This document shows positions 6,358-32,957 of a DNA stretch of 64,000 bases, one piece after another. Numbering within the stretch: position 1 is the stretch's first letter; each line of letters opens with the position of its first letter. The position numbers were made by a program, and so were the translations under genes. The stretch spans positions 53,320,001 through 53,384,000 of the forward strand of contig OZ365109.1 of assembly GCA_977030845.1 (NCBI GenBank), read 5' to 3'. The notes below the pieces were generated by a model that made no database searches, had not been told where the DNA came from, and worked only from the letters and a program-made list of their open reading frames with translations. The stretch is from Fimbriosthenelais zetlandica. Its lineage: Eukaryota.

Positions 6358-9300
6358 ATGTACACATTGAGAATTTTAGGGACTTCTCAGATAAGAAGGC
6401 TGGAGGGTGGTTGAGGGAGGCTAAAGAAAAAGGGGGCCAGAAACACTTCCATGCAAGAAGTTGTTGCTATAAATTAAATAAGCTATTGTTATGAAACAAA
6501 CGATCCCCTGTTTGGACACATTTCAGCATTTAATATTTATCCCATGTGATAAAGGATGAGGGGATGGAATAGACGGAGATCCGAGTCCAGAGTAGTTATA
6601 ATCACTATAGTTAGTGAGCTGATGCGAGTAGGTCGGCGTAGCGGCCAGTTTATAACCTATTTATTGCACCTCGGTACAAAATTTAGTTTTGCTTTTGCTA
6701 TCCAAAACACAAACTAGCTTTACATGATATTTACAGGCCAAGTAATCTTTGTAAGATTTGTATATGCATGCATCATTATACAATGTAGTTCAATTATGGA
6801 CCTCTATACTTATTACAGAATCGTAGAAATTCCCCAAGTATTTGTAATAACCCCAATTAACGCCCATGAGCTCATTCTATAGCAGCAGGCCATTATAATG
6901 GATGGGCTAGATGAATGAGGCTCCATGCAACCAGCCCATTAGTGCCTATTGTAATAAGTAATATACAGGCATGTCTGTGCCTGGCACTGAGAGTGCAACC
7001 TCAGCAAAAGCTAGGTGACCGTGATTTTCCGACAATCGGTACTTGATCATTGAAGCCTGGTTATATAATATCTGTGGCCATAATATCAATGCAGTTATAG
7101 GCTTAATAATAAGTAAAAGCTTTGAAAAAAAGTATGCATTATTATGGGACATATTTTGAATTGGGTCTTGTTATGGAAATCTATGGAAAGACCAAAACAA
7201 CTCGCATGATATACAATGGGTCAATCATTTTATATCTATTATGGATTAAAACCTACATAATAGCACATAATTGCTGTATGACTGAATCTTTTGATCAACT
7301 TTATATGGAAGTCATTAAAACGATTTTAACCCAGTGCCGGTAGGGATTTGCCCGCCATTCTCTGCAGATGAATACACCACCGTGAATTCCCATAGAGTTA
7401 ATTACATGGGCGATAATAGAGCTTTTCAGAAATGTCAACGTAGTAAAGCCGGGATTTAGTTTAATAACGAGCCCCGGGAGAAGTTTTACACGTTGCAAAG
7501 CGAGCATTCTCTCTAAATCAGAGCAGATCATACCCGTCCCTGGAATAATTCTTCCTCCTCCCTAATCAATGACAAACAAGCTGCTCCTTTCTATTTTTCC
7601 GCGCCTCCGCGCGACAGTCGATGAAATGACTGTCTGATATGACGGTTTCTTTTATTATCGTCATGGCGTGAGGGCCTGAATTATCGTCAGTTGAGACTGT
7701 TCACTGGACGCGAGGAAACCTTCCTCATTACGTCAAATGATTATGACGTCACAAAGCTACCAAGAGAAGTCAATCTAATTGAGAGGATTCTTCATGCCTT
7801 TTCTCTTTAGTTGCCCCCTTTCCGATCTCTGGACGAAAAAGGAGCCTGATAAATTGTGTCAACTGTAGTATCTTTTGCGTTTTAGGCTTCCTCGAGCTAA
7901 TTACTCTTGGGCTGCCTTAACCAAAGAAGAATGGAGTTTGCTATACGCCTAGCTAGGATTTTACTAGCTTGATTGTTATATACGCCCTCCCTTACATTCA
8001 GCGTTGCAATGAACAAAGAGATATAATGGCTATTCAAACGACATAAATGGCTTTTCTTCAGTCAGATCCATCTTGTTTGGAATCATTTCAATAAATTACA
8101 GCCTCTGATTCATTGGATCTGTACATATAAGAAGGTTATAGAGGGCTTAGGTCAAATCGATTTGTCTATTATGAGTTCTGAGAAAGTACCTTTCCATTAG
8201 GACTGGAAATAGGAAGGCTTTATGTCTTTCTACCATCGTACCACGCCATCTGTTTCCCAATGACCCCATATTGTACTCCCCCTCATCTTAGTGATCTCCT
8301 GAGGATCCTTTTCTTGACGATGCAAGTCCTTCTTTTAAACAACAACACAGGAATCCCGACAAAACATGTCTCCTTACCTACAATACCCTCAGCTCTACTG
8401 CTTATTTCAGACACGTGGCCTTCAACATCCGGCCTTATTTATTTTAGGCCAAAGATCAATATCTCTTATTTCCACTCTACCTGTCATTGGCATTGTATTA
8501 CTCTTTAAAATGACTCGGTACATTCTTCTCTAAAATCAGAAATGAATCCTGCCTCCTGAATAAAAGTGCATTGTTCGGTCAAAGCCAATAATAGGGACCT
8601 CACATTTAATTGATAAACCTTATAATGCCCTCTACACAATTGCTGGTATGCCGGGTGGTATTATATACCTTTAATGAACCTACACTGACTGCGACCTTTG
8701 GTCACTTGCGTTAAGGACAATATTGCCCGCCTCCAAGACAGTGTTCTGAGCTATTCAGATATCCGATTGAGGTAGAATCTGATATCGAACAAAATGTATA
8801 GTAGGTTGCAAAAACCTCTGCTAGGTATGACATTTTGGAAGAATTCAGTTAGTTAATACTTTCTTTACATTATCCCCTTATTCTAATTCCTGTCGGGACC
8901 ATTTTATGAATAATATTCAAATCTTGTCAATGGAAAACTATGGTTTTGTTAGTGCATAGTTGTCTTGAAACAGGTCCATGCAGTTTGGGTATTCATATTT
9001 GGCCCGAGGGACAAGAGAAAGGGAGAGGGCATGAAAAAGAAGAGGAGTGGAAGCAATGGTGGTCACGAACAGTTCAATCACAACAATTTCAATCACTTCT
9101 GAGCTGATGTGAGCAGATCATATGTTTGATTAAGTTCAAGTTCATAATTAAATTTTGCCTTATAAATTGGATGATCTGATAAGGGCAGCCTGCCCCTGGT
9201 AGAAACTTGCACATCTACAGTAATCGCAAATTTGAATAAATTATTTTCAGGTTTCGTACTTTTTTTGCGTTATATGACGTCTGACGTACACACTGAAAGG

Positions 9301-12300
9301 ATGACATTTCTGGAGGAAGGGTTAAGCCTCCTGAGATGTCAGGAGCCACCAGCCCTCCTGTGGATTGATCTTATCAAGTTTTCTTGAAGAAATCAATAGC
9401 TTTTGTTACATTTACTCTCTCCCATCAGGAAATATGTGAACATATATATATATATACTGACTTCGTTGATACATAATATAGAACTTCTGTGTATTTTTCT
9501 CTACTGTGGAGAATAAAATTGCCCATGGCTGTGATAGATATGGCAAAATAGGACAGAAAATATGATAACAATTTTGCAAATTCAAAGAATTTTATTGTTT
9601 CGTAATATTTTGAATTTGACTTCAAAGATTTTAAAAAAGCTTCTTTCACACATGCGATACACATATAGATACAATCATACCAGTACCTTGCCTTGTCTTA
9701 TAACTAGTCTTTTCGGCCCTTTCCACATTGTTCAGGCACTGTGCATCACTATAACATAATAGGGCATCACTATAAAATAATAGGGCATCTGCCCTTCATG
9801 CCTAGCAATGAGCATCCCTGCATGCATCGGCTCAACATAATATTATCACTATCTCAATATATTGGCCTGTGTTCTCCAATGCCCCAAGATCCGTGAGGAA
9901 AATCTATATCAATATATATCAGGCCTATGTCTTTCTTTGGGGGCATTGCGTATCACTATATGATGCCTTCTCATTGAGCCTGTGACCTCTAATACTCCAG
10001 GGGCATTTAGAATATCTCCATTTTAACTGGGCTGTTCTCTATAGGTCTACCATGTGTTGGTTCATATAGTAATCATATTTAAAGCAAGAGAGTAGAGGTA
10101 ATTCCTGTGGGTAGGGTTTTTTCTACATTTTGTCCTCTTCTACTTTGTGCCATTGTCATGGCTGGTCGGTTCAATATAATATACTGTTGTGGCGACAGTT
10201 GCTGCGATTTTGCACTGACATCAGTATAGGGAAAAGGGACTCAGTAAGGTTTAGATGATGTCGCTCGGTATCAAAAACCTGTGTTGGGTATTCAGTTAGA
10301 TGTGTTATAGTGACTGCTGTGGAACAGCACTTAGAAATATAAGTGCTGGATCGTTTAATGATAAATTCCACAGATAAATAGATAGGTCTGTGTAGGCCTA
10401 CAGCTTGGCCAAATGAATGTCATGTATATCATAAATATTCCTTTGGAAAGGCACTATGTTTTGTGAATGTAGAACAAGAGAAAACACAGAAACACAAAAA
10501 CACTTAACCTAATCCTTTCCTCAAAGATTAGTTCACGTCATTGAGCTACTCTGAGCTACTCTGAGCTAATGCCCCTCATAATGACATGCCTATAATTCTG
10601 TGCAACTACTGAGGCTTCACTGCCAAATCTAATAAGTTCATTCAACAACTTTTAAAAGGATAGGCTCTTCCATCGTTTGACCGGGGATCAAGCATTACAT
10701 AGAGACCCATGAAAGAATCATGAAACGGAGGAGTCATGCTAATGGATAAGCAAAGGAATGTATAATTCCCATGGGAAAGACTCGATTGATTCTTCATAAC
10801 AGCGAACCATGTGGAGAGTGCACAGACATGATCTTATCTGACAATATACCTTTGTTCATGTGCCATCCATTCCTCGGCTATAATAGAAGTATGCGGAGAA
10901 ACATCGATAAAATGTGGTAAAAATCACATCCAACAATAAACATCCACAATCGATATATTTCGCCTCATCAGTTCTAATAGCTCTCAGAGCCTCGGGTGGT
11001 TAGGGTATTGATTAGTTGGGAAAGAAGCCAACACTCACACCATCAGCTTTTATGCGAGGTAGAATGTCTTGGACAGGATTTTTTGCTAAAATCAAATATC
11101 CTTGAATCAAGATGATGAGGCTCTTTTTCTCCTATGATGCCTTCTCAAAATGTCGATTTTCGTAGGGTATAACTTTTTAATTACCTCCAATGGGATGACC
11201 TAGAATTGAGACGGGATGTTGACAATATGGAGTTGGTGTTATGATTCTGTGATCCAAAGATTTAACTAAATGTCTGTGCGGCACGCAAAAAGGCAGAATT
11301 TAAGAACAGTCCGTCTTCTCTCACGTGTATTGATTTGGTTTCCTGTTTAATTCGGTAACCCAATCCACTTTTCACCTTTGAATTTTACCCTACTCCATTT
11401 TAAGGCTCTTCCCTTTTGTGTACATAACTTTACTGAATCAACAACCGAGTGTATTCCAAAGCTACAGATTTAAATATAATGAAGTAGACACTATAGAAAG
11501 GAATGAAGATGTAGATTTAAAGAAGATTAGAACAAATCAGTTTTTTTAGCTTAGTGTATTATGTTTTTAAACCTTTACCGTTGTGAGCAAAAGTGTGAAG
11601 AGTTTGTGCAAATTGTGTCAGAACAAGGAGCTTCTCAGGCGAACTAATTACCTCCTCGACCCAGATAAACCCAATACCATTTGACACCAAAGTGACAAAT
11701 ATTTGCACTTCCTGGACAATTAGCTCTGGTCTTGTCATCTGGATTAGCTTTCATTGTAGTTGAATAAAAAGTGTACGTGAAAATAATATTTACTTTGGGC
11801 TTTGCTGGTTCTCTGTGCTGATGACAATGACCCGAGAAAAATGGTCCCATGATAGGAGAGATCAGGTTGTGGTTCCCATTGAAATTCCATGGCACATGAG
11901 ATGTTATGATGAAATATTTGAATGCATTTGTGGAGGCCCCTTGAATATAGATTCATTTCAATTAACATGAACACGACCATTTTGCCTAATACATTTTTAT
12001 AGATCGATGCATAATTTATTTTGGTATTTAATCTAATATTTCAACTACATAAAAGCCTCCTCATTTGTACCATGTACATTTTTTGTGATGTCAGTTCAAA
12101 GTCGACCCCCAACCCCCCAACAAAACCCAAACAAAACAGTCTCTTGTCATATTTAATTGTTGTCTGATCGTCCCATCTGGTATATAGTTCACAATGTCAA
12201 ACATCCTTGTTATTCCATGCACGTTGTAGCTACAATTCCTTTGGCTGAGATAAGTCCAGTGCCATCCTGCAGAATGCTGTCATGCATGCAATGATAAGGC

Positions 12301-16602: not shown

Positions 16603-17049
16603 TTACGCCATTATGTGTGGCGCTGAAAACAAGATGGCGAACGTTGACACAATGGTAAACAGGGTAAACATCCATAGGCAAAGCCTATCAATAACCATGG
16701 CTGCAAACTTCCAGTCATTGCAATGATCATCAAAATCTTCATCTTTCTTCATCTTCTCAGTTAGAAATCTGAGTTCTTTTAAAATTTCCCGCAGTTCCAC
16801 CTTCCCAGGATACATATGAAGCGAATTGTCATCATTTCCAAGTTTGACACTAGTGTAATGGGGGGCGCTATTCGCCCGGAAGTCATCGTCCAGGTCAAGG
16901 ACATTGGCCAACAAACTTTTGGAAGAACGCTCTCTCAATTCTAAGTCTCGCATCTTAGCATTTTGGATTAACTTCTTTCGCGTAATTTCTTTTCCGGGCC
17001 GCTGCATTCTCAGCAACCAAGCTAGCCACTCGCAAACACCCTTCTTCAC
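16603..17049 (-). CDS. CHRNA7-like: nAChR last exon (exon 10 equivalent): intracellular loop + M4 + stop
   Basis: Acceptor TTCTGAACAG|GTG, phase 0. Encodes [19 protein letters not shown]...[15 protein letters not shown]...[40 protein letters not shown]. Confidence 0.96.
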
Positions 17050-17315: not shown

Positions 17316-17425
17316 CCACTGGGGCATCTCATGCGTGTCCGGTGTTCGATGATGGTAGTTTAATACCAGGACGGTGAAGACGACAGACAAGGAACACATC
17401 AGCATGATACAGGCAAAGTACATAC
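17316..17425 (-). CDS. CHRNA7-like: nAChR exon 9 (M3)
   Basis: 110 nt, TGTAG|GT ATG ... TGG|GTTAGT. Encodes (G)[36 protein letters not shown]. Confidence 0.95.
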
Positions 17426-20502: not shown

Positions 20503-20589
20503 CTATTAGCGGTACTGCGTCCGAGGTAGGGGGCATTGTTTCTGCTACCAGTAGGAGAAACACGGTAAGGGACAGTAGGATAGTGACGC
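20503..20589 (-). CDS. CHRNA7-like: nAChR exon 8 (M2 and M2-M3 loop); too short for the ORF track
   Basis: 87 nt, CTCCATTCCAG|GC ... ATA G|GTGAGA. Encodes (G)[28 protein letters not shown](G). Confidence 0.95.
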
Positions 20590-22283
20590 CTGGAATGGAG
20601 AAACATCAGAAAACTCAGAATCATGAGTAAAAGCTCTAAAATATCGCCTCCAGCTTGAGGGGACTCGTAGAAAATTGATTATATAGCTATTTACTGCCTG
20701 GATTGGAATAAGTTAAGTATAAATCAAGATAATTATGCATAACCAAAGGATCCGAAATAGAGATTTTATAGGTGTTTGGATTTTCATATGCAATGCATCT
20801 ATATTCCTCTCAAAAGAATCTTAAAATTAATATTTGAGTATCAATTTTCAAGTGGCCCCTCTTAAATCAGTTTAAATTCTCACTCGCACAACATCTAATT
20901 AACTAATTGCTGCCTGAAAGAATGGTTTTTGCTGCTTCAAGAAGATTCCGTCACTATACTTTTATAAAAGTGTGTATCAATCTACCGGTAGAAGTATGTT
21001 TTATCGGGGATTTTTGTGTCAGAAAAAGTTCCCTTTTCTTTGGAGTGTTTCAATGGAGAGTTCAACCTGCCCTATCACAGGCATTTTCCTTTCAATATTG
21101 GTAACTTAAAAGCAGCAGCAAACCAATCATCAGCATCCCATTTATGAAACACACAACTGTGGATACACATTTATAATTATAGTCTACCACTATACTGTGA
21201 TAACAGTTATACATGATACATAAGTACTATATCAATATGATATTTACATTCCTCAATAACACACATCAAACACTGAAAATGACACAGCCAAACGCTGGGA
21301 CCAATAGGTCTACACTAGGGCCCTCAGGCGGCCAACTGTGTCATCTCATGTGACAATACCAGTAGTGCCCTCTAGCAGAAACTATGTACATTTCAATGGC
21401 AAACGCTATGGCCATCTGGTGAGGAAAGCGTGCGGAGTGAAGGACATCAAAAGGGCCTTGGGTCAGGGGGATCATAACTTTTATACTTTTTTTGAATATC
21501 AATGATAATTGACGACATAACATATTATTTGTAAGATTTTGTTCTAGGGCACGAAACGTCTATCCATCTTCTGATTATTAATGACTATATGACACGTACG
21601 TAACAGTCAAAACGAATTGTATAAAGTCATGAATATAGATAAAACGACAATTTTCTAGTTTGCTTTCAAGGAAAATTATTGAAAGGTATCAATCAAAAAT
21701 ACTTTTGATAAACAGACCTGAAAGCATAATCAAATTGAAAAGGAAACGTGAACATGGTCCAATTTCCTGATAGTTAGGGAGTTTTGTTTTTTTTCATAAT
21801 ATCAAGGTACCGGTATGTAGGCCAATAAATACGTTTCTTTCATGCATCAAGACCTGAAACACATTTACTATTCGGGCGAATCTCTGAAAATGACCTAGTC
21901 GTTCATGAATCGCAGATAAAAAATAATCTCAATTTCGTAATTATTTAACGTCGATATGATCGTTTCCTACCATTATAACGCTTTTCAATAACACATGTTT
22001 CTACAAGGAAAGATCGAGTCTTCAAAAGTTTTAAATAAATTTGAATTTTCGGATTAAAATGCAGCATTCTTATTGATTACAGGCCAAGAAACTGAAATTG
22101 AGGAGCTGAAAGAAAGAGCTTCAAAATTAATGATTTCTGGTGTTTTCTTTCGGACCCAGTCCAAAACACAAACATGCAAACAGGAATGTTCAAAAGTTTA
22201 AAAAAAGTGATGGTGAGAGGTCATGACGTCAGAGGCCATGATGATGATGACGTCACACATGGTCATGTGATAATAGGTCTTAC

Positions 22284-22478
22284 CTAGGGAAATCTTCTCC
22301 CCAGCATCGGGAGGGAGGGTGAATGTCAGCAGAGCCATTGATGATATCAAAACACATGGGATAATTAAGTTAAATCCATAATAAAGCGTTCTTCGACGTA
22401 TGTGAATGGTAAATGTAATATCTATGTACTGTTCAGGGCAGCAATCGTATTGCACTACATTGCGTTTGGCTGGTACAC
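22284..22478 (-). CDS. CHRNA7-like: nAChR exon 7b (canonical alpha7-like copy: loop C, M1, M2 start)
   Basis: 195 nt, phase 1-1, TTTTCTCTTCTAG|GT ... CTA G|GTAAGA. Encodes (G)[64 protein letters not shown](G). Confidence 0.95.
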
Positions 22479-22564
22479 CTAGAAGAGAAAACATGGGCAA
22501 CTGGTCAAAAACAAACATGTCGGCATCGCCTTAGATGTGAAAAGAAGAGTTAGAGGAGACCTAC

Positions 22565-22759
22565 CACATGCAATTTTCTCTCCGGCATCAGGGGGCATGG
22601 CGAATACCAGTATCGAGAGTAGGGAAAGCATGAGGCAGGGTACAACCAAGTTAAAAACGTAGTAGAGCTTTCTGCGTCTGATTTTGACGGTAAAGGTTAT
22701 ATCGATATATTGCTCGGGGCAACAGTCGTACTGTACAACATTCCTGGAGGCAGGCACAC
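22565..22759 (-). CDS. CHRNA7-like: nAChR exon 7a (divergent tandem duplicate of exon 7; putative mutually exclusive exon)
   Basis: 195 nt, phase 1-1, TCTTTGCAG|GT ... TGT G|GTAGGT. Encodes (G)[64 protein letters not shown](G). No stops or indels; 46/65 aa identical to 7b. Confidence 0.88.
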
Positions 22760-24984
22760 CTGCAAAGACACGACACCAAGTTTACTCCTGTTCTCCTTTT
22801 TTCTCAATTCCCCCCGCATGCACAAAGCTGCTCTTTGATGATGCTGCCAATCTGATGGTCTTTTTAAGGGGAGACTTTGGGAACGCCAGAAGAAACATTT
22901 TAAGACATGCTCTTCCAACTTATAACTTCCCAAATGTTGTTTCCGTTCTGAAGCCATATGCAGGTCCTTCAAGTGCATGGAGATCAAAACCAAAGCCAGA
23001 ACCAATGTGGAGAACAGGAATTATCCAGAAGTTATTAAAACCAACAAGCAAGGTGGTCGAACAATTAGTGCATGGGAAACTGTCTTTTGGCAAGTCACAC
23101 CAAGCTTGTAAAAGAGCTCAAACTCAAAAATTGGACATAATAGCAAAAGGCTCATGTAACATTTTTAGAAAAATTGATTCCCCAAATATATTTAGAAAAG
23201 TAGAATCCAATGAAAGATTTTACATAGAGTTAAGTCAAAGTGATGAAAGTAAAATCAAAAAAGCCATTTCAAAGTTTGCAGCGAATTGATTCAAGGAAAA
23301 TACACAAAATTGAAAAAGCATGTGGAATTCTGGTTAAACTGAGGGGCATTCACAGGAACAGATGATTTGTAATGATGACATGCAATGGGATTCTAATCCA
23401 CTGCTTGGAAGGAAATTGTTATTAAGATAAATCATAATCCTTGCAGTCTCAGCACTATTCTAATTGGTAATTTCAGTTCTAGAGGTTTGGGCCACATTGA
23501 TGAACTAAATGTGCTTGTTTAAGACAATTCACACTCGTTGTGAAGTAATATGATAGCTATGTCGAAGAACAGAGACCCAAGGAAACAGTGTTTCGGCATG
23601 GCCATATTAAACTTTCAGGCTTTGAACTATTGTATGGACCAACTTGGACAAGTACATTTGTGAAAATGCAGAAACACTGACACACTTCGTAACTGCCTCT
23701 AGGAACACACGTGTACGGTACAGCTGTGCCCATTTGTGAGAAATTTTGTCATCCAAAACTTGTAAATTATAATTATGATCGAGTGATAGAACAATTTTGA
23801 GGTCGAAAAAATGGATAGGTGTCGCAAATATGAAGACCAGAAAGCTCCATAATTCAATCCTATGTACAATAACGTACAAAATAATGTTAAAAATAGTTGA
23901 TATCTAAAGTTTATCTATAGATAAGTGTTAGAAGTTATAGATTGAAAGAAACACCATCATTAAAAATTACTCTCATCTAGAATGCAGGGTTTAAATACAG
24001 CTCAAGCTATAGCAAGGAGGCATAGTTAAATCAGAGAGGTAATTAATATATCCGGTTAAAATTACAAGCCTGTGAATTTAAGTTCTTTAATCAAATTCAA
24101 ATATTACGAAAGAAATACGAACTCAAAAACCAAAGACGGTTTGTCGCGAATAATGGAATTAAAACATTATTGGTGCCATAAATCCATGTCATAAATTATC
24201 CATGCAAAGGGTTAATTAACGAGAATTTCATCACAAATTGACATCAAGTTGCCAGATACACTGACAAGCCTCGATGGGCTATGGTTGAATATATACCATA
24301 TCATTATGTTGGACTGTATAAAGTTAAGGATATTATTTTAGTTTTTAAAGTTATCTCTCGTTGCTTCATTTTCACAAATAGTTTTGCCTTTGATTTTGCC
24401 AGTGCAATATATCAGGTATATTTTAAGCAGGATTTTTACTGACGTGCTACATGTGAATGGTTTAATGTACATTCTACTTTTACTGTCGGAAGGATACATT
24501 GTGCCTCTAAATTTAAATAACTTAATACAGAAACAAAATCAATTGTATCCTAATATTAGGTTATTAGGGGTGTTATAATATAGGTAGGGGTTGTGGTTAG
24601 ATATCAGCCTTTCACACTTATTGGTCTCAATCATTCTCACTCAACTCAGTTCATTCATATCCGTTAACTGTAATCAGTTTACCCCAATTATAATTTTTAT
24701 ACCCATTCCCGAAATGTATTGGACTGTGCATAATTTGACTAAGCGGTTAATAGACAAACTACAATAATTCTAACATAGCTAGTGATAGATTATGGAGGTT
24801 AGCAATATGTTAGCTGTCTTGCGACCCCACCCCCATCCGAATCTCTTTATCATTTCTTGCCCTTATCTCTCAATATTTTCTCTCCTCTCAGATTTACCTT
24901 ATTGCTGTCACATAGTTAAATTTGGTTCAATCTATATCTTTGTCTATCGTTTTCACTTTCTGTGCCATATCTCCCAGTTTCACT

Positions 24985-25107: not shown

Positions 25108-25361
25108 CCACAAGCTCCCACTCTCCGTTGGGTATAAAACTGGAGATGTCGCCACCTTCGCCTTGAAGTTGCAGATCGATCGCAAACCCATCATAGGTCC
25201 ACGACCCGAACTTCATCGTACATTTTTGGTCATCAAATGGAAACCATGTAATATCTATTTTACATGTGCTCAAAAAAAGTCCCGGTGGGACCCAGAGGCA
25301 GTCCCCATTTGATGAGACGACTACATTGGTTGGGAATGTACTGTCGATGTCTTCGTCCGCA
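25108..25361 (-). CDS. CHRNA7-like: nAChR fused exon 5+6 (loop E, Cys-loop, loop B, loop F)
   Basis: 254 nt, CTTATTTCTAG|T GCG ... GTG G|GTGAGA. Encodes (S)[84 protein letters not shown](G). Confidence 0.95.
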
Positions 25362-25902: not shown

Positions 25903-26012
25903 CTGTTATACATGAGTATGTCTGGCTTCCAAAGATACTTTGGAGGGACTCGTATGCTTTTGACCCCTCCATATTCGGTTTCGTTCCAGCGTAGGTTATA
26001 GTCATTCCACAC
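25903..26012 (-). CDS. CHRNA7-like: nAChR exon 4 (loop A)
   Basis: 110 nt, CTTTCTAG|GTG ... AAC AG|GTTGGG. Encodes [36 protein letters not shown](S). Confidence 0.95.
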
Positions 26013-31257: not shown

Positions 31258-31302
31258 CAAATTTAACCAGATATTTGTGTTTATGATTTGATTCTTTTCA
31301 TC
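31258..31302 (-). CDS. CHRNA7-like: nAChR exon 3b (loop D; putative mutually exclusive exon)
   Basis: 45 nt, TTTCTCGTTTCTCTGCAG|GAT ... TTG|GTAAGT. Encodes DEKNQIINTNIWLNL. Confidence 0.9.
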
Positions 31303-31414: not shown

Positions 31415-31459
31415 CATATTCAACCATATATTAGATGTTAATATTTGGTTCTTTTCATC
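31415..31459 (-). CDS. CHRNA7-like: nAChR exon 3a (loop D; putative mutually exclusive exon)
   Basis: 45 nt, TTTATTTTTCCCAG|GAT ... ATG|GTAAGT. Encodes DEKNQILTSNIWLNM. Confidence 0.9.
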
Positions 31460-32817: not shown

Positions 32818-32957
32818 CACGTCGATGATCTGTTGCAGTACGAGTCCAAAATAGACGGTCAAAGCTTCACTTTCGTTTGCAACTGGACGTTCTAATGTGT
32901 CGTAATTCTTAAAAATGTCTGATAAAAGCCTTTTTTCGTTTGGACCTTGGTAGGTAC
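32818..32957 (-). CDS. CHRNA7-like: nAChR exon 2 (mature N-terminus)
   Basis: 140 nt, TTTTCTTTTCCAG|GT ... GTG|GTAAAG. Encodes (G)TYQGPNEKRLLSDIFKNYDTLERPVANESEALTVYFGLVLQQIIDV. Confidence 0.95.

Follow-up and report, generated by a model that had tools for sequence, protein, structure and literature searches.

The nicotinic acetylcholine receptor (nAChR) subunit gene described here lies on the minus strand of a 64,000-nucleotide (nt) stretch of the Fimbriosthenelais zetlandica genome (contig OZ365109.1 of GenBank assembly GCA_977030845.1, positions 53,320,001 to 53,384,000), termed the window, to which all coordinates given without another sequence name refer. Exon 7 of this alpha7/alpha6-type gene is present in two tandem copies, 7a and 7b, which probably form a functional and essentially mutually exclusive pair of alternative exons. 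In such a scheme, a tandem exon duplication would have produced a conserved pair of alternatives within one subunit gene, and each functional mRNA would carry one copy, as inclusion of both would add a second membrane helix in frame and inclusion of neither would remove the first membrane segment (M1). Exon 7b would be the canonical default version and 7a the more freely evolving, still selected version, so that the gene would make two subunits with the same agonist site and a different membrane/gating module and inner pore mouth. The pair is arranged as follows:

Exon 7a, positions 22565-22759, minus strand: 195 nt, the divergent copy, with a peptide ending in GEKIAC.
Intron between 7a and 7b, positions 22479-22564, minus strand: 86 nt, with the donor GTAGGT.
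Exon 7b, positions 22284-22478, minus strand: 195 nt, the canonical alpha7-like and putative default copy, with a peptide ending in GEKISL.

Both copies encode loop C with its YDCC motif, the pre-M1 stretch, M1, the M1-M2 linker and positions -1' to 3' of the second membrane segment (M2), and both have the same phase (1-1), in which two bases complete a codon and one base opens the next. A pyrimidine tract and AG stand before each copy and GT after it (GTAGGT for 7a, GTAAGA for 7b), and neither copy contains a stop codon or an indel. Equal length, equal phase and separate splice sites, the latter judged from the sequence, render the copies interchangeable, and the reading frame is open from exon 2 to the stop codon with either of them (461 residues counted from exon 2). 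At the DNA level 127 of 195 positions are identical (65%) and at the protein level 45 of 64. The 64 whole codons comprise 15 that are the same in both copies, 30 with a synonymous difference and 19 with an amino-acid change, 18 of these changes being located C-terminal of loop C; the first 23 whole codons contain 15 silent differences and a single replacement. By the Nei-Gojobori method the proportion of synonymous differences (pS) is 0.89, which is saturated, and the nonsynonymous divergence (dN) is 0.22. The Pfam family Neur_chan_memb matches both copies, and human alpha7 is the best match among solved structures for each, covering residues 178-241 end to end for 7b (86 bits) and residues 179-240 for 7a (70 bits). 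A search of the whole window with the exon peptides (tblastn) returned two copies of exon 7, one copy of the exon encoding most of the second transmembrane segment (the TM2 exon, exon 8) and two copies of the 45-nt exon 3. A preliminary description of this locus, prepared from the letters alone, had already reported two 195-nt phase 1-1 exons 86 nt apart with AG/GT sites and without stops or indels; a recount returned the same anatomy and exactly the same silent and replacement counts, early in the exon and past loop C. Its flanking junction coordinates, 25108 and 20589, agree with the splice-site gene model, and its statement that inclusion of both copies preserves the frame holds, as both are 195 nt long and in the same phase.

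The conservation of the pair was assessed by an exhaustive profile search with 7a, which returned many pieces of invertebrate genomes resembling open reading frames (ORFs), mostly from environmental assemblies, and several of these run through two tandem copies of exon 7. The order 7a followed by 7b was found in four further invertebrate species (L001; L003, L004 and L005, which represent one species; L006; L007), and the short contigs L008 and L009 carry 7a by itself. Capitella teleta, an annelid (locus L011), has 7a at positions 6423-6617 and 7b at positions 6768-6962, and its gene model CAPTEDRAFT_221893 holds 3a and 3b together with 7a and 7b. Models of Macrostomum lignano contain a 7a-like copy and 7b, and one of them (P0156) contains 7a alone. 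Wherever an exon-7 copy was checked in the DNA, a pyrimidine tract with AG precedes it and GT follows it; for 7a the donor reads GTAGGT throughout, with the sole exception of L008 (GTACGT). Outside the window the 7a-7b intron measures 54, 75, 76, 150 (Capitella) and 795 nt (L007). Further 7a-type genomic ORFs share the signature RRRKLYY[VI]FNLVVPC...EK[IV]T[CM], and a protein search with the 7a of the window as query returned only short genomic ORFs. The 7a of L006 shares 48% identity with that of the window, yet its frame is open and its splice sites are intact; judged by its sequence, it may be decaying, being lost or repurposed in that lineage.

A maximum-likelihood tree was calculated from 70 exon peptides (63 columns) and rooted on human alpha7. 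Here, 19 7a-like rows, including those of the window, L001, L003, L007 and Capitella, form one clade with a support of 94/81, and an inner group of 14 7a-like rows that includes the window reaches 96/91*. The same 7a clade was recovered at 97/73 in an earlier tree rooted on an ACR-16-like sequence. The 7b-like copies of these species group together in an unresolved grade. The 7a of Macrostomum clusters with the 7b of the same species, and the approximately unbiased (AU) test does not reject one common origin for every 7a-like copy (p = 0.30); in the Macrostomum 7a, the loop C half appears to have been homogenised within the species and the M1 half bears the 7a signature. From this tree, the tandem duplication appears to predate the divergence of the 7a-clade lineages, Capitella and the window species among them, and it possibly occurred before flatworms split off, whereas 63 columns are too few for deeper branching, e.g. 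for placing the duplication before or after the split from arthropods.

The ratio of nonsynonymous to synonymous divergence (omega) is 0.10-0.25 among 7a orthologs wherever the synonymous divergence (dS) is estimable, with a dS of 0.31 and a dN of 0.079 between L001 and L003 as an example, and 0.01-0.03 among 7b orthologs, while pS between the paralogs reaches 0.8-0.9. Since omega is well below 1 for both, the two copies are retained as coding sequence, with 7a under weaker constraint. At the nucleotide level, 7a shows the fewest differences of all exons compared with contigs of three close relatives: 13/218 and 15/229, where exons 6, 7b and 8 give 74/530 and 79/585 (Fisher p = 0.002 and 0.005). 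Regulated alternative exons are known for added constraint at their silent sites. These results agree with the preliminary description, which had proposed an old duplication with both copies under selection and had suggested a dN/dS analysis and a search of related genomes for both exons as checks: the pairs are intact across species, 7a forms a clade, omega is far below 1 for both copies, and 7a and 7b occur with splice sites in the four further species and in Capitella. An absent or disrupted 7a in sister species had been named as a reason to abandon the proposal; in the four further species and Capitella, as on L008 and L009, 7a has an open frame and retains its splice sites.

A search with a 5-kb stretch listed no RNA run of the species itself, and the best runs of any kind contained at most 6% of the sampled words. 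The RNA evidence consists of sequencing runs of relatives, four of which were aligned at 80% likeness. Two of them, X22 and X24, are labelled "RNA?", and the other two, X6 and X2, represent relatives' DNA that holds both exons. In X22, a 649-nt contig with a depth of 42 runs from exon 5/6 into 7b and on into exon 8, skipping 7a, and its joints coincide with exon borders (20588|22283, with GT..AG on the gene strand, and 22479|25116); this contig is spliced mRNA that skips 7a. In X24, a 3841-nt contig with a depth of 26.6 starts exactly one base before exon 8, at a G that 7a and 7b have in common, and its loose end is the start of exon 9, which identifies it as spliced. A 252-nt contig of the same run (depth 14.9) matches the core of 7a (22623-22682) with 3 mismatches and by position extends past exon 7a by 29 nt toward exon 8 and by 28 nt toward exon 6. 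An alternative exon of 195 nt whose last base and first two bases also occur in a competitor is expected, at k=31, to yield a branch of 195 - 3 + 60 = 252 nt with overhangs of exactly these lengths, and the single shared base is predicted independently by the start point of the 3841-nt contig. This geometry is, indirectly, what a spliced 7a that competes with another upstream exon would give. Mutually exclusive use, as expected in the preliminary description, can be considered likely and short of proven: the contig joining exons 6, 7b and 8 in one relative's run supports it directly for 7b, and the contig geometry in X24 indirectly for 7a.

The remaining exons were placed using the Capitella protein as a guide together with splice sites:

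Exon 2, positions 32818-32957, minus strand: 140 nt.
Exon 3a, positions 31415-31459, minus strand: 45 nt, encoding DEKNQILTSNIWLNM (loop D), with AG/GT.
Exon 3b, positions 31258-31302, minus strand: 45 nt, encoding DEKNQIINTNIWLNL (loop D), with AG/GT.
Exon 4, positions 25903-26012, minus strand: 110 nt.
Fused exons 5+6 (vertebrate numbering), positions 25108-25361, minus strand: 254 nt, constitutive, located upstream of 7a and holding the Cys-loop.
Exon 8, positions 20503-20589, minus strand: 87 nt, single-copy, encoding the remainder of M2.
Exon 9, positions 17316-17425, minus strand: 110 nt, encoding M3.
Last coding exon, positions 16603-17049, minus strand: intracellular loop, M4 and stop codon.

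The exons match the Pfam families Neur_chan_LBD and Neur_chan_memb, and the encoded protein combines the Cys-loop in exon 5/6, vicinal cysteines in both copies of exon 7 and four membrane segments. The gene is classified by its sequence as an alpha7/insect alpha6-type nAChR subunit, and is the orthologue of this type in a spiralian, because of these Pfam matches, human alpha7 as the best solved match, its exon sizes and its similarity to the alpha7-like protein of Capitella. The exon sizes (140/45/110/195/87/110) are those of vertebrate CHRNA7, and the motifs of the intracellular loop agree with the Capitella protein and also resemble insect alpha6. Capitella teleta is the source of the nearest named sequence, with 85-89% identity over exons 5/6 and 7b, and the gastropod Bulinus reaches 61-71% in the same alignment. 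The protein sequence of exon 8 is identical in L001, L003, L006, L007 and Capitella, and this exon is single-copy in these five loci as well as in the window. The tandem 45-nt exon 3 pair is of the DEKNQ...W.. (loop D) type found in arthropod alpha6 exons 3a/3b and is also present in Capitella (L011, 4311-4355 and 4614-4658); its distribution suggests that the exon 3 duplication may predate the protostome split.

Several observations weigh against an alternative use of 7a and 7b and have to be balanced with the evidence above. Region-restricted searches of full-length proteins (a 5.8-billion collection), with the 7a of Macrostomum and Capitella as queries, found a 7a-type exon only in the Capitella and Macrostomum models, most of which contain both copies, while P0156 has 7a alone; clustering of this collection at 90% may hide 7a isoforms. 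The Bulinus locus L010 has one copy of exon 7, which is of the 7b type, and the 7a of L006 (6079-6270) is without the M1 cysteine and reads GEN instead of GEK. The sole 7a contig of X22 (288 nt, depth 4.8) matches the intron on both sides (17 nt upstream and 6 nt downstream) at a depth equal to that of an intronic contig, so that 7a looks unspliced in this sample, and among the relatives' runs no read or contig directly spans a junction of 7a with exon 6 or exon 8. In addition, nonsense-mediated decay cannot police the choice between the copies, because a transcript with both or neither stays in frame. An alternative explanation is that 7a is a real exon that does not obey a strict either/or rule, being included jointly with 7b or entering non-productive or regulatory transcripts that lower the amount of functional receptor. 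Double inclusion would be in frame, both copies are joined in the Capitella and Macrostomum models as well as in crustacean models for their own exon-7 pairs, tandem inclusion of exons 3a and 3b is documented in silkworm and tick within the same gene family, and the 7a-7b introns of Capitella (150 nt) and L007 (795 nt) pose no steric bar to 7a-7b splicing in these species. This explanation is nevertheless considered unlikely, as a purely regulatory use would not keep M1-like hydrophobicity, the Pro-Cys and GEK motifs and the clade-fixed residues at an omega of 0.1-0.25, the mRNA contig of a relative contains 7b alone, and gene models with both copies are most simply viewed as annotation artefacts of in-frame duplicates.

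That 7a might instead be an unused relic, a pseudo-exon that never enters mRNA, would accommodate its solely unspliced context and intron-like depth in X22, the finding of no annotated single-7a isoform outside Macrostomum and the degenerate appearance of the L006 copy. It is very improbable in view of the open frame, pyrimidine tract with AG and GTAGGT donor, all of which are preserved in 7a across the window, Capitella and five other assemblies despite saturated silent sites; the omega of 0.10-0.25 argues against a pseudo-exon as well, no other exon is as well conserved in DNA sequence between close relatives as 7a, and the contig geometry in X24 fits a spliced 7a. Another reading would equate the pair with the exon 8 cluster (8a/8b/8c) of insect alpha6 under a different numbering, given that the gene is a clear alpha6/alpha7-type orthologue that has the exon 3a/3b pair in common with arthropods, and that exon 8 is stated in some papers to include "part of TM2", as exon 7 here also holds the first M2 residues. 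A Plutella transcript without exon 8b has been reported to lose TM2 with no frame shift, and the exon removed in this case corresponds to the 87-nt exon next in order after the duplicated one of the window; this 87-nt TM2 exon is single-copy in the window, L001, L003, L006, L007 and Capitella, and dipteran-type genomic ORFs show a separate loop C/M1 exon with the same boundaries. On the basis of the Plutella exon 8b skipping and the copy numbers, identity with the insect cluster was rejected, and it is hardly credible that the two are the same. A length estimate based on identity percentages was at odds with a TM2 exon of 87 nt and carries no weight in this rejection.

Mutually exclusive exons of nAChR genes are textbook knowledge in insects, where alpha6 is the target of spinosad and the modules swapped are loop D or TM2, and the alpha6 exons 3a/3b and 8a/8b/8c were reportedly treated in work by Grauso in 2002 and by Rinkevich and Scott. 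Vertebrate CHRNA7 has exon 7 as a single constitutive exon, which is alike in length (195 nt), phase, encoded segment and neighbouring exon sizes and differs in that it is duplicated here. In line with the preliminary description, which names exons 3 and 8, published work gives 3a/3b and 8a/8b/8c as the exclusive exons of insect alpha6, exon 8 being the one that encodes TM2, and the vertebrate exons that correspond to exons 3 and 8 of insects are treated as constitutive (Jin 2007, PMC1919356). The gene of the window and insect alpha6 belong to the same alpha7/alpha6 lineage, exchange a module through tandem exon duplicates and have a 45-nt exon 3 pair; moreover, 8b is ultra-conserved and 8a/8c evolve faster, as observed for 7b and 7a. 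In contrast, insects duplicate the TM2 exon 8, whereas the duplicate here is the 195-nt exon before it, which covers loop C, M1 and the first part of M2 and stands next to a single exon 8, and the exon 7 pair is found not in insects but in spiralians, namely the annelid Capitella and perhaps the flatworm Macrostomum. Other exclusive exons of Cys-loop receptor genes, i.e. insect alpha4 exon 4, Bombyx alpha8 exon 7 (TM2-TM3), RDL exons 3 and 6 and GluCl exon 3, are likewise tandem-duplicated alternatives that diversify one subunit gene, and the papers covered describe none of them as exchanging loop C and M1 together with the cytoplasmic M2 end.

A tandem duplication of exon 7 with both copies intact, and with models that join both, also exists in crustacean alpha6-like genes, as seen in the barnacle Amphibalanus amphitrite (KAF0300447.1, P0004), the isopod Armadillidium vulgare (KAL7640434.1, P0005) and two further crustacean contigs (P0003, P0007). 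These copies differ in lacking RRRKLYYVFNLVVPCL and the EK-x-T-C signature, and the tree suggests that the crustacean duplication is independent and arthropod-internal, because its copies fall inside the arthropod clade. No exon-7 switch was found in the full-text literature on mollusc, lophotrochozoan and crustacean nAChRs, with most subscription journals outside this coverage, in line with the preliminary description, which knew of no such exon pair in any nAChR. The literature on exons coding for the first membrane segment returned only the exclusive-exon cases of insects and ticks, and splicing is not treated in the main comparative paper on lophotrochozoan nAChRs. Both the general principle and the family of the gene have precedents; the duplicated exon, the swapped module and the animal branch have none in the literature covered.

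The consequences of the swap for the receptor were examined using alpha7 residue numbers, derived from an alignment to human alpha7. In M1, the changes from 7b to 7a that are fixed in the clade are G211 to V/I, I215 to V, I216 to V, V219 to L/F/M, M224 to L and L231 to M, and the pore changes comprise S240 (2') to T (A in the window) and L241 (3') to C/M. Usual, not fixed, are T207 to K and A225 to S; position 225 of alpha7 presumably lies in the transmembrane modulator site. Constant in 7a and 7b are loop C (YxCC), P217, C218, S222 and the G-E237-K motif, which contains the -1' Glu. Judged from these alignments, the swap is predicted to spare the agonist-binding loop and the -1' ring and to exchange one face of M1 together with the innermost pore-lining residues. 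From general knowledge of Cys-loop channels, such an exchange would be expected to alter conductance, gating or modulator sensitivity.

A broader interpretation, toward which the balance tips slightly, is that the pair represents an ancient switch of M1 and the inner pore (2'/3') that spares the agonist site and dates at least to the ancestor of the 7a-clade lineages, possibly to the annelid-flatworm ancestor, with an independent exon-7 duplication in crustaceans and a duplicated TM2 exon in insects, and with 7a providing a distinct channel class in spiralian nervous systems. If true, the alpha7/alpha6 gene would be a repeated target for building modular receptors via exclusive splicing, and channels built with the 7a module (the M1 face including alpha7 position 225, and the 2' ring) would form a separate class in physiological terms. 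Next to loop D and TM2, 7a/7b would add a third swapped module, M1 with the cytoplasmic pore end, in another branch of animals, and the pair would constitute a natural experiment addressing the influence of M1 and residues 2'/3' on gating, conductance and sensitivity to allosteric modulators in alpha7-type channels. It would also expose a systematic annotation error, in which the Capitella, Macrostomum, barnacle and isopod models include both copies and thereby a spurious extra membrane helix.

With regard to the control of exon choice, the 7a-7b intron contains the motif CTCTAAC 10-16 nt from the donor and TTTTGAC about 27 nt from the acceptor, the latter being an ordinary branch-point candidate. 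Steric exclusion by a short intron was ruled out as a general mechanism by the 150-nt (Capitella) and 795-nt (L007) introns, and the normally placed branch-point candidate in the window also counts against it; it may contribute in some species. Incompatibility of U12 and U2 splice sites was ruled out too, as the donors GTAGGT and GTAAGA are ordinary. Candidate regulators of exon choice, by their sequence, are GCAUG (Rbfox-type) motifs around the pair and two complementary arms in the intron between exon 6 and 7a:

GCAUG (within UGCAUG), positions 22817-22821, minus strand: 62 nt upstream of the 7a acceptor.
Second GCAUG, positions 22906-22910, minus strand: upstream of 7a.
Third GCAUG, positions 22173-22177, minus strand: 107 nt downstream of 7b.
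Downstream intronic complementary arm, positions 23656-23675, minus strand: inside the conserved island 23644-23682.
Upstream intronic complementary arm, positions 24360-24379, minus strand: inside the conserved island 24359-24384.

Counted over five species, the 300-nt flanks of 7a and 7b contain 13 GCAUG motifs where 3.8 are expected (Poisson p = 2e-4, in a test that was post hoc), and Capitella has one such motif 11 nt from the 7a acceptor. The two islands are the only parts of the exon 6-7a intron that align with the relatives' contigs, and the arms within them are 20-mers with 18/20 complementary positions (90%), unique in the window (2 matches against 0.02 expected); in more distant loci the complementary pair was not detected. 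Downstream of the 7b donor, at a distance of 30-60 nt, two perfect TGACGTCA palindromes resembling the cyclic AMP response element (CRE) lie 24 nt apart at 22224-22231 and 22248-22255, and the whole window contains 4 of them against 0.43 expected.

Further observations concern individual loci. The Bulinus truncatus model KAH9524882.1 (JAGDYQ010000002.1, L010) is scrambled, with exon 3-like and exon 4-like pieces past its 3' end and two matches to exon 4, at 12066 and 40273. In L007, the last part of exon 6 is matched a second time by a short segment (GDLSSFIRNGEWDLI) at positions 6917-6961, about 700 nt downstream of the complete exon, and this segment may represent either an incomplete duplicate of the exon or an alternative 3' part. 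Finally, the Macrostomum lignano model P0153 contains two successive TM2-exon peptides, one of them being VTIMLSLSMFQLLVADAMPQTSESVPLIG, which suggests a tandem duplication of exon 8 in this species, as in insects.

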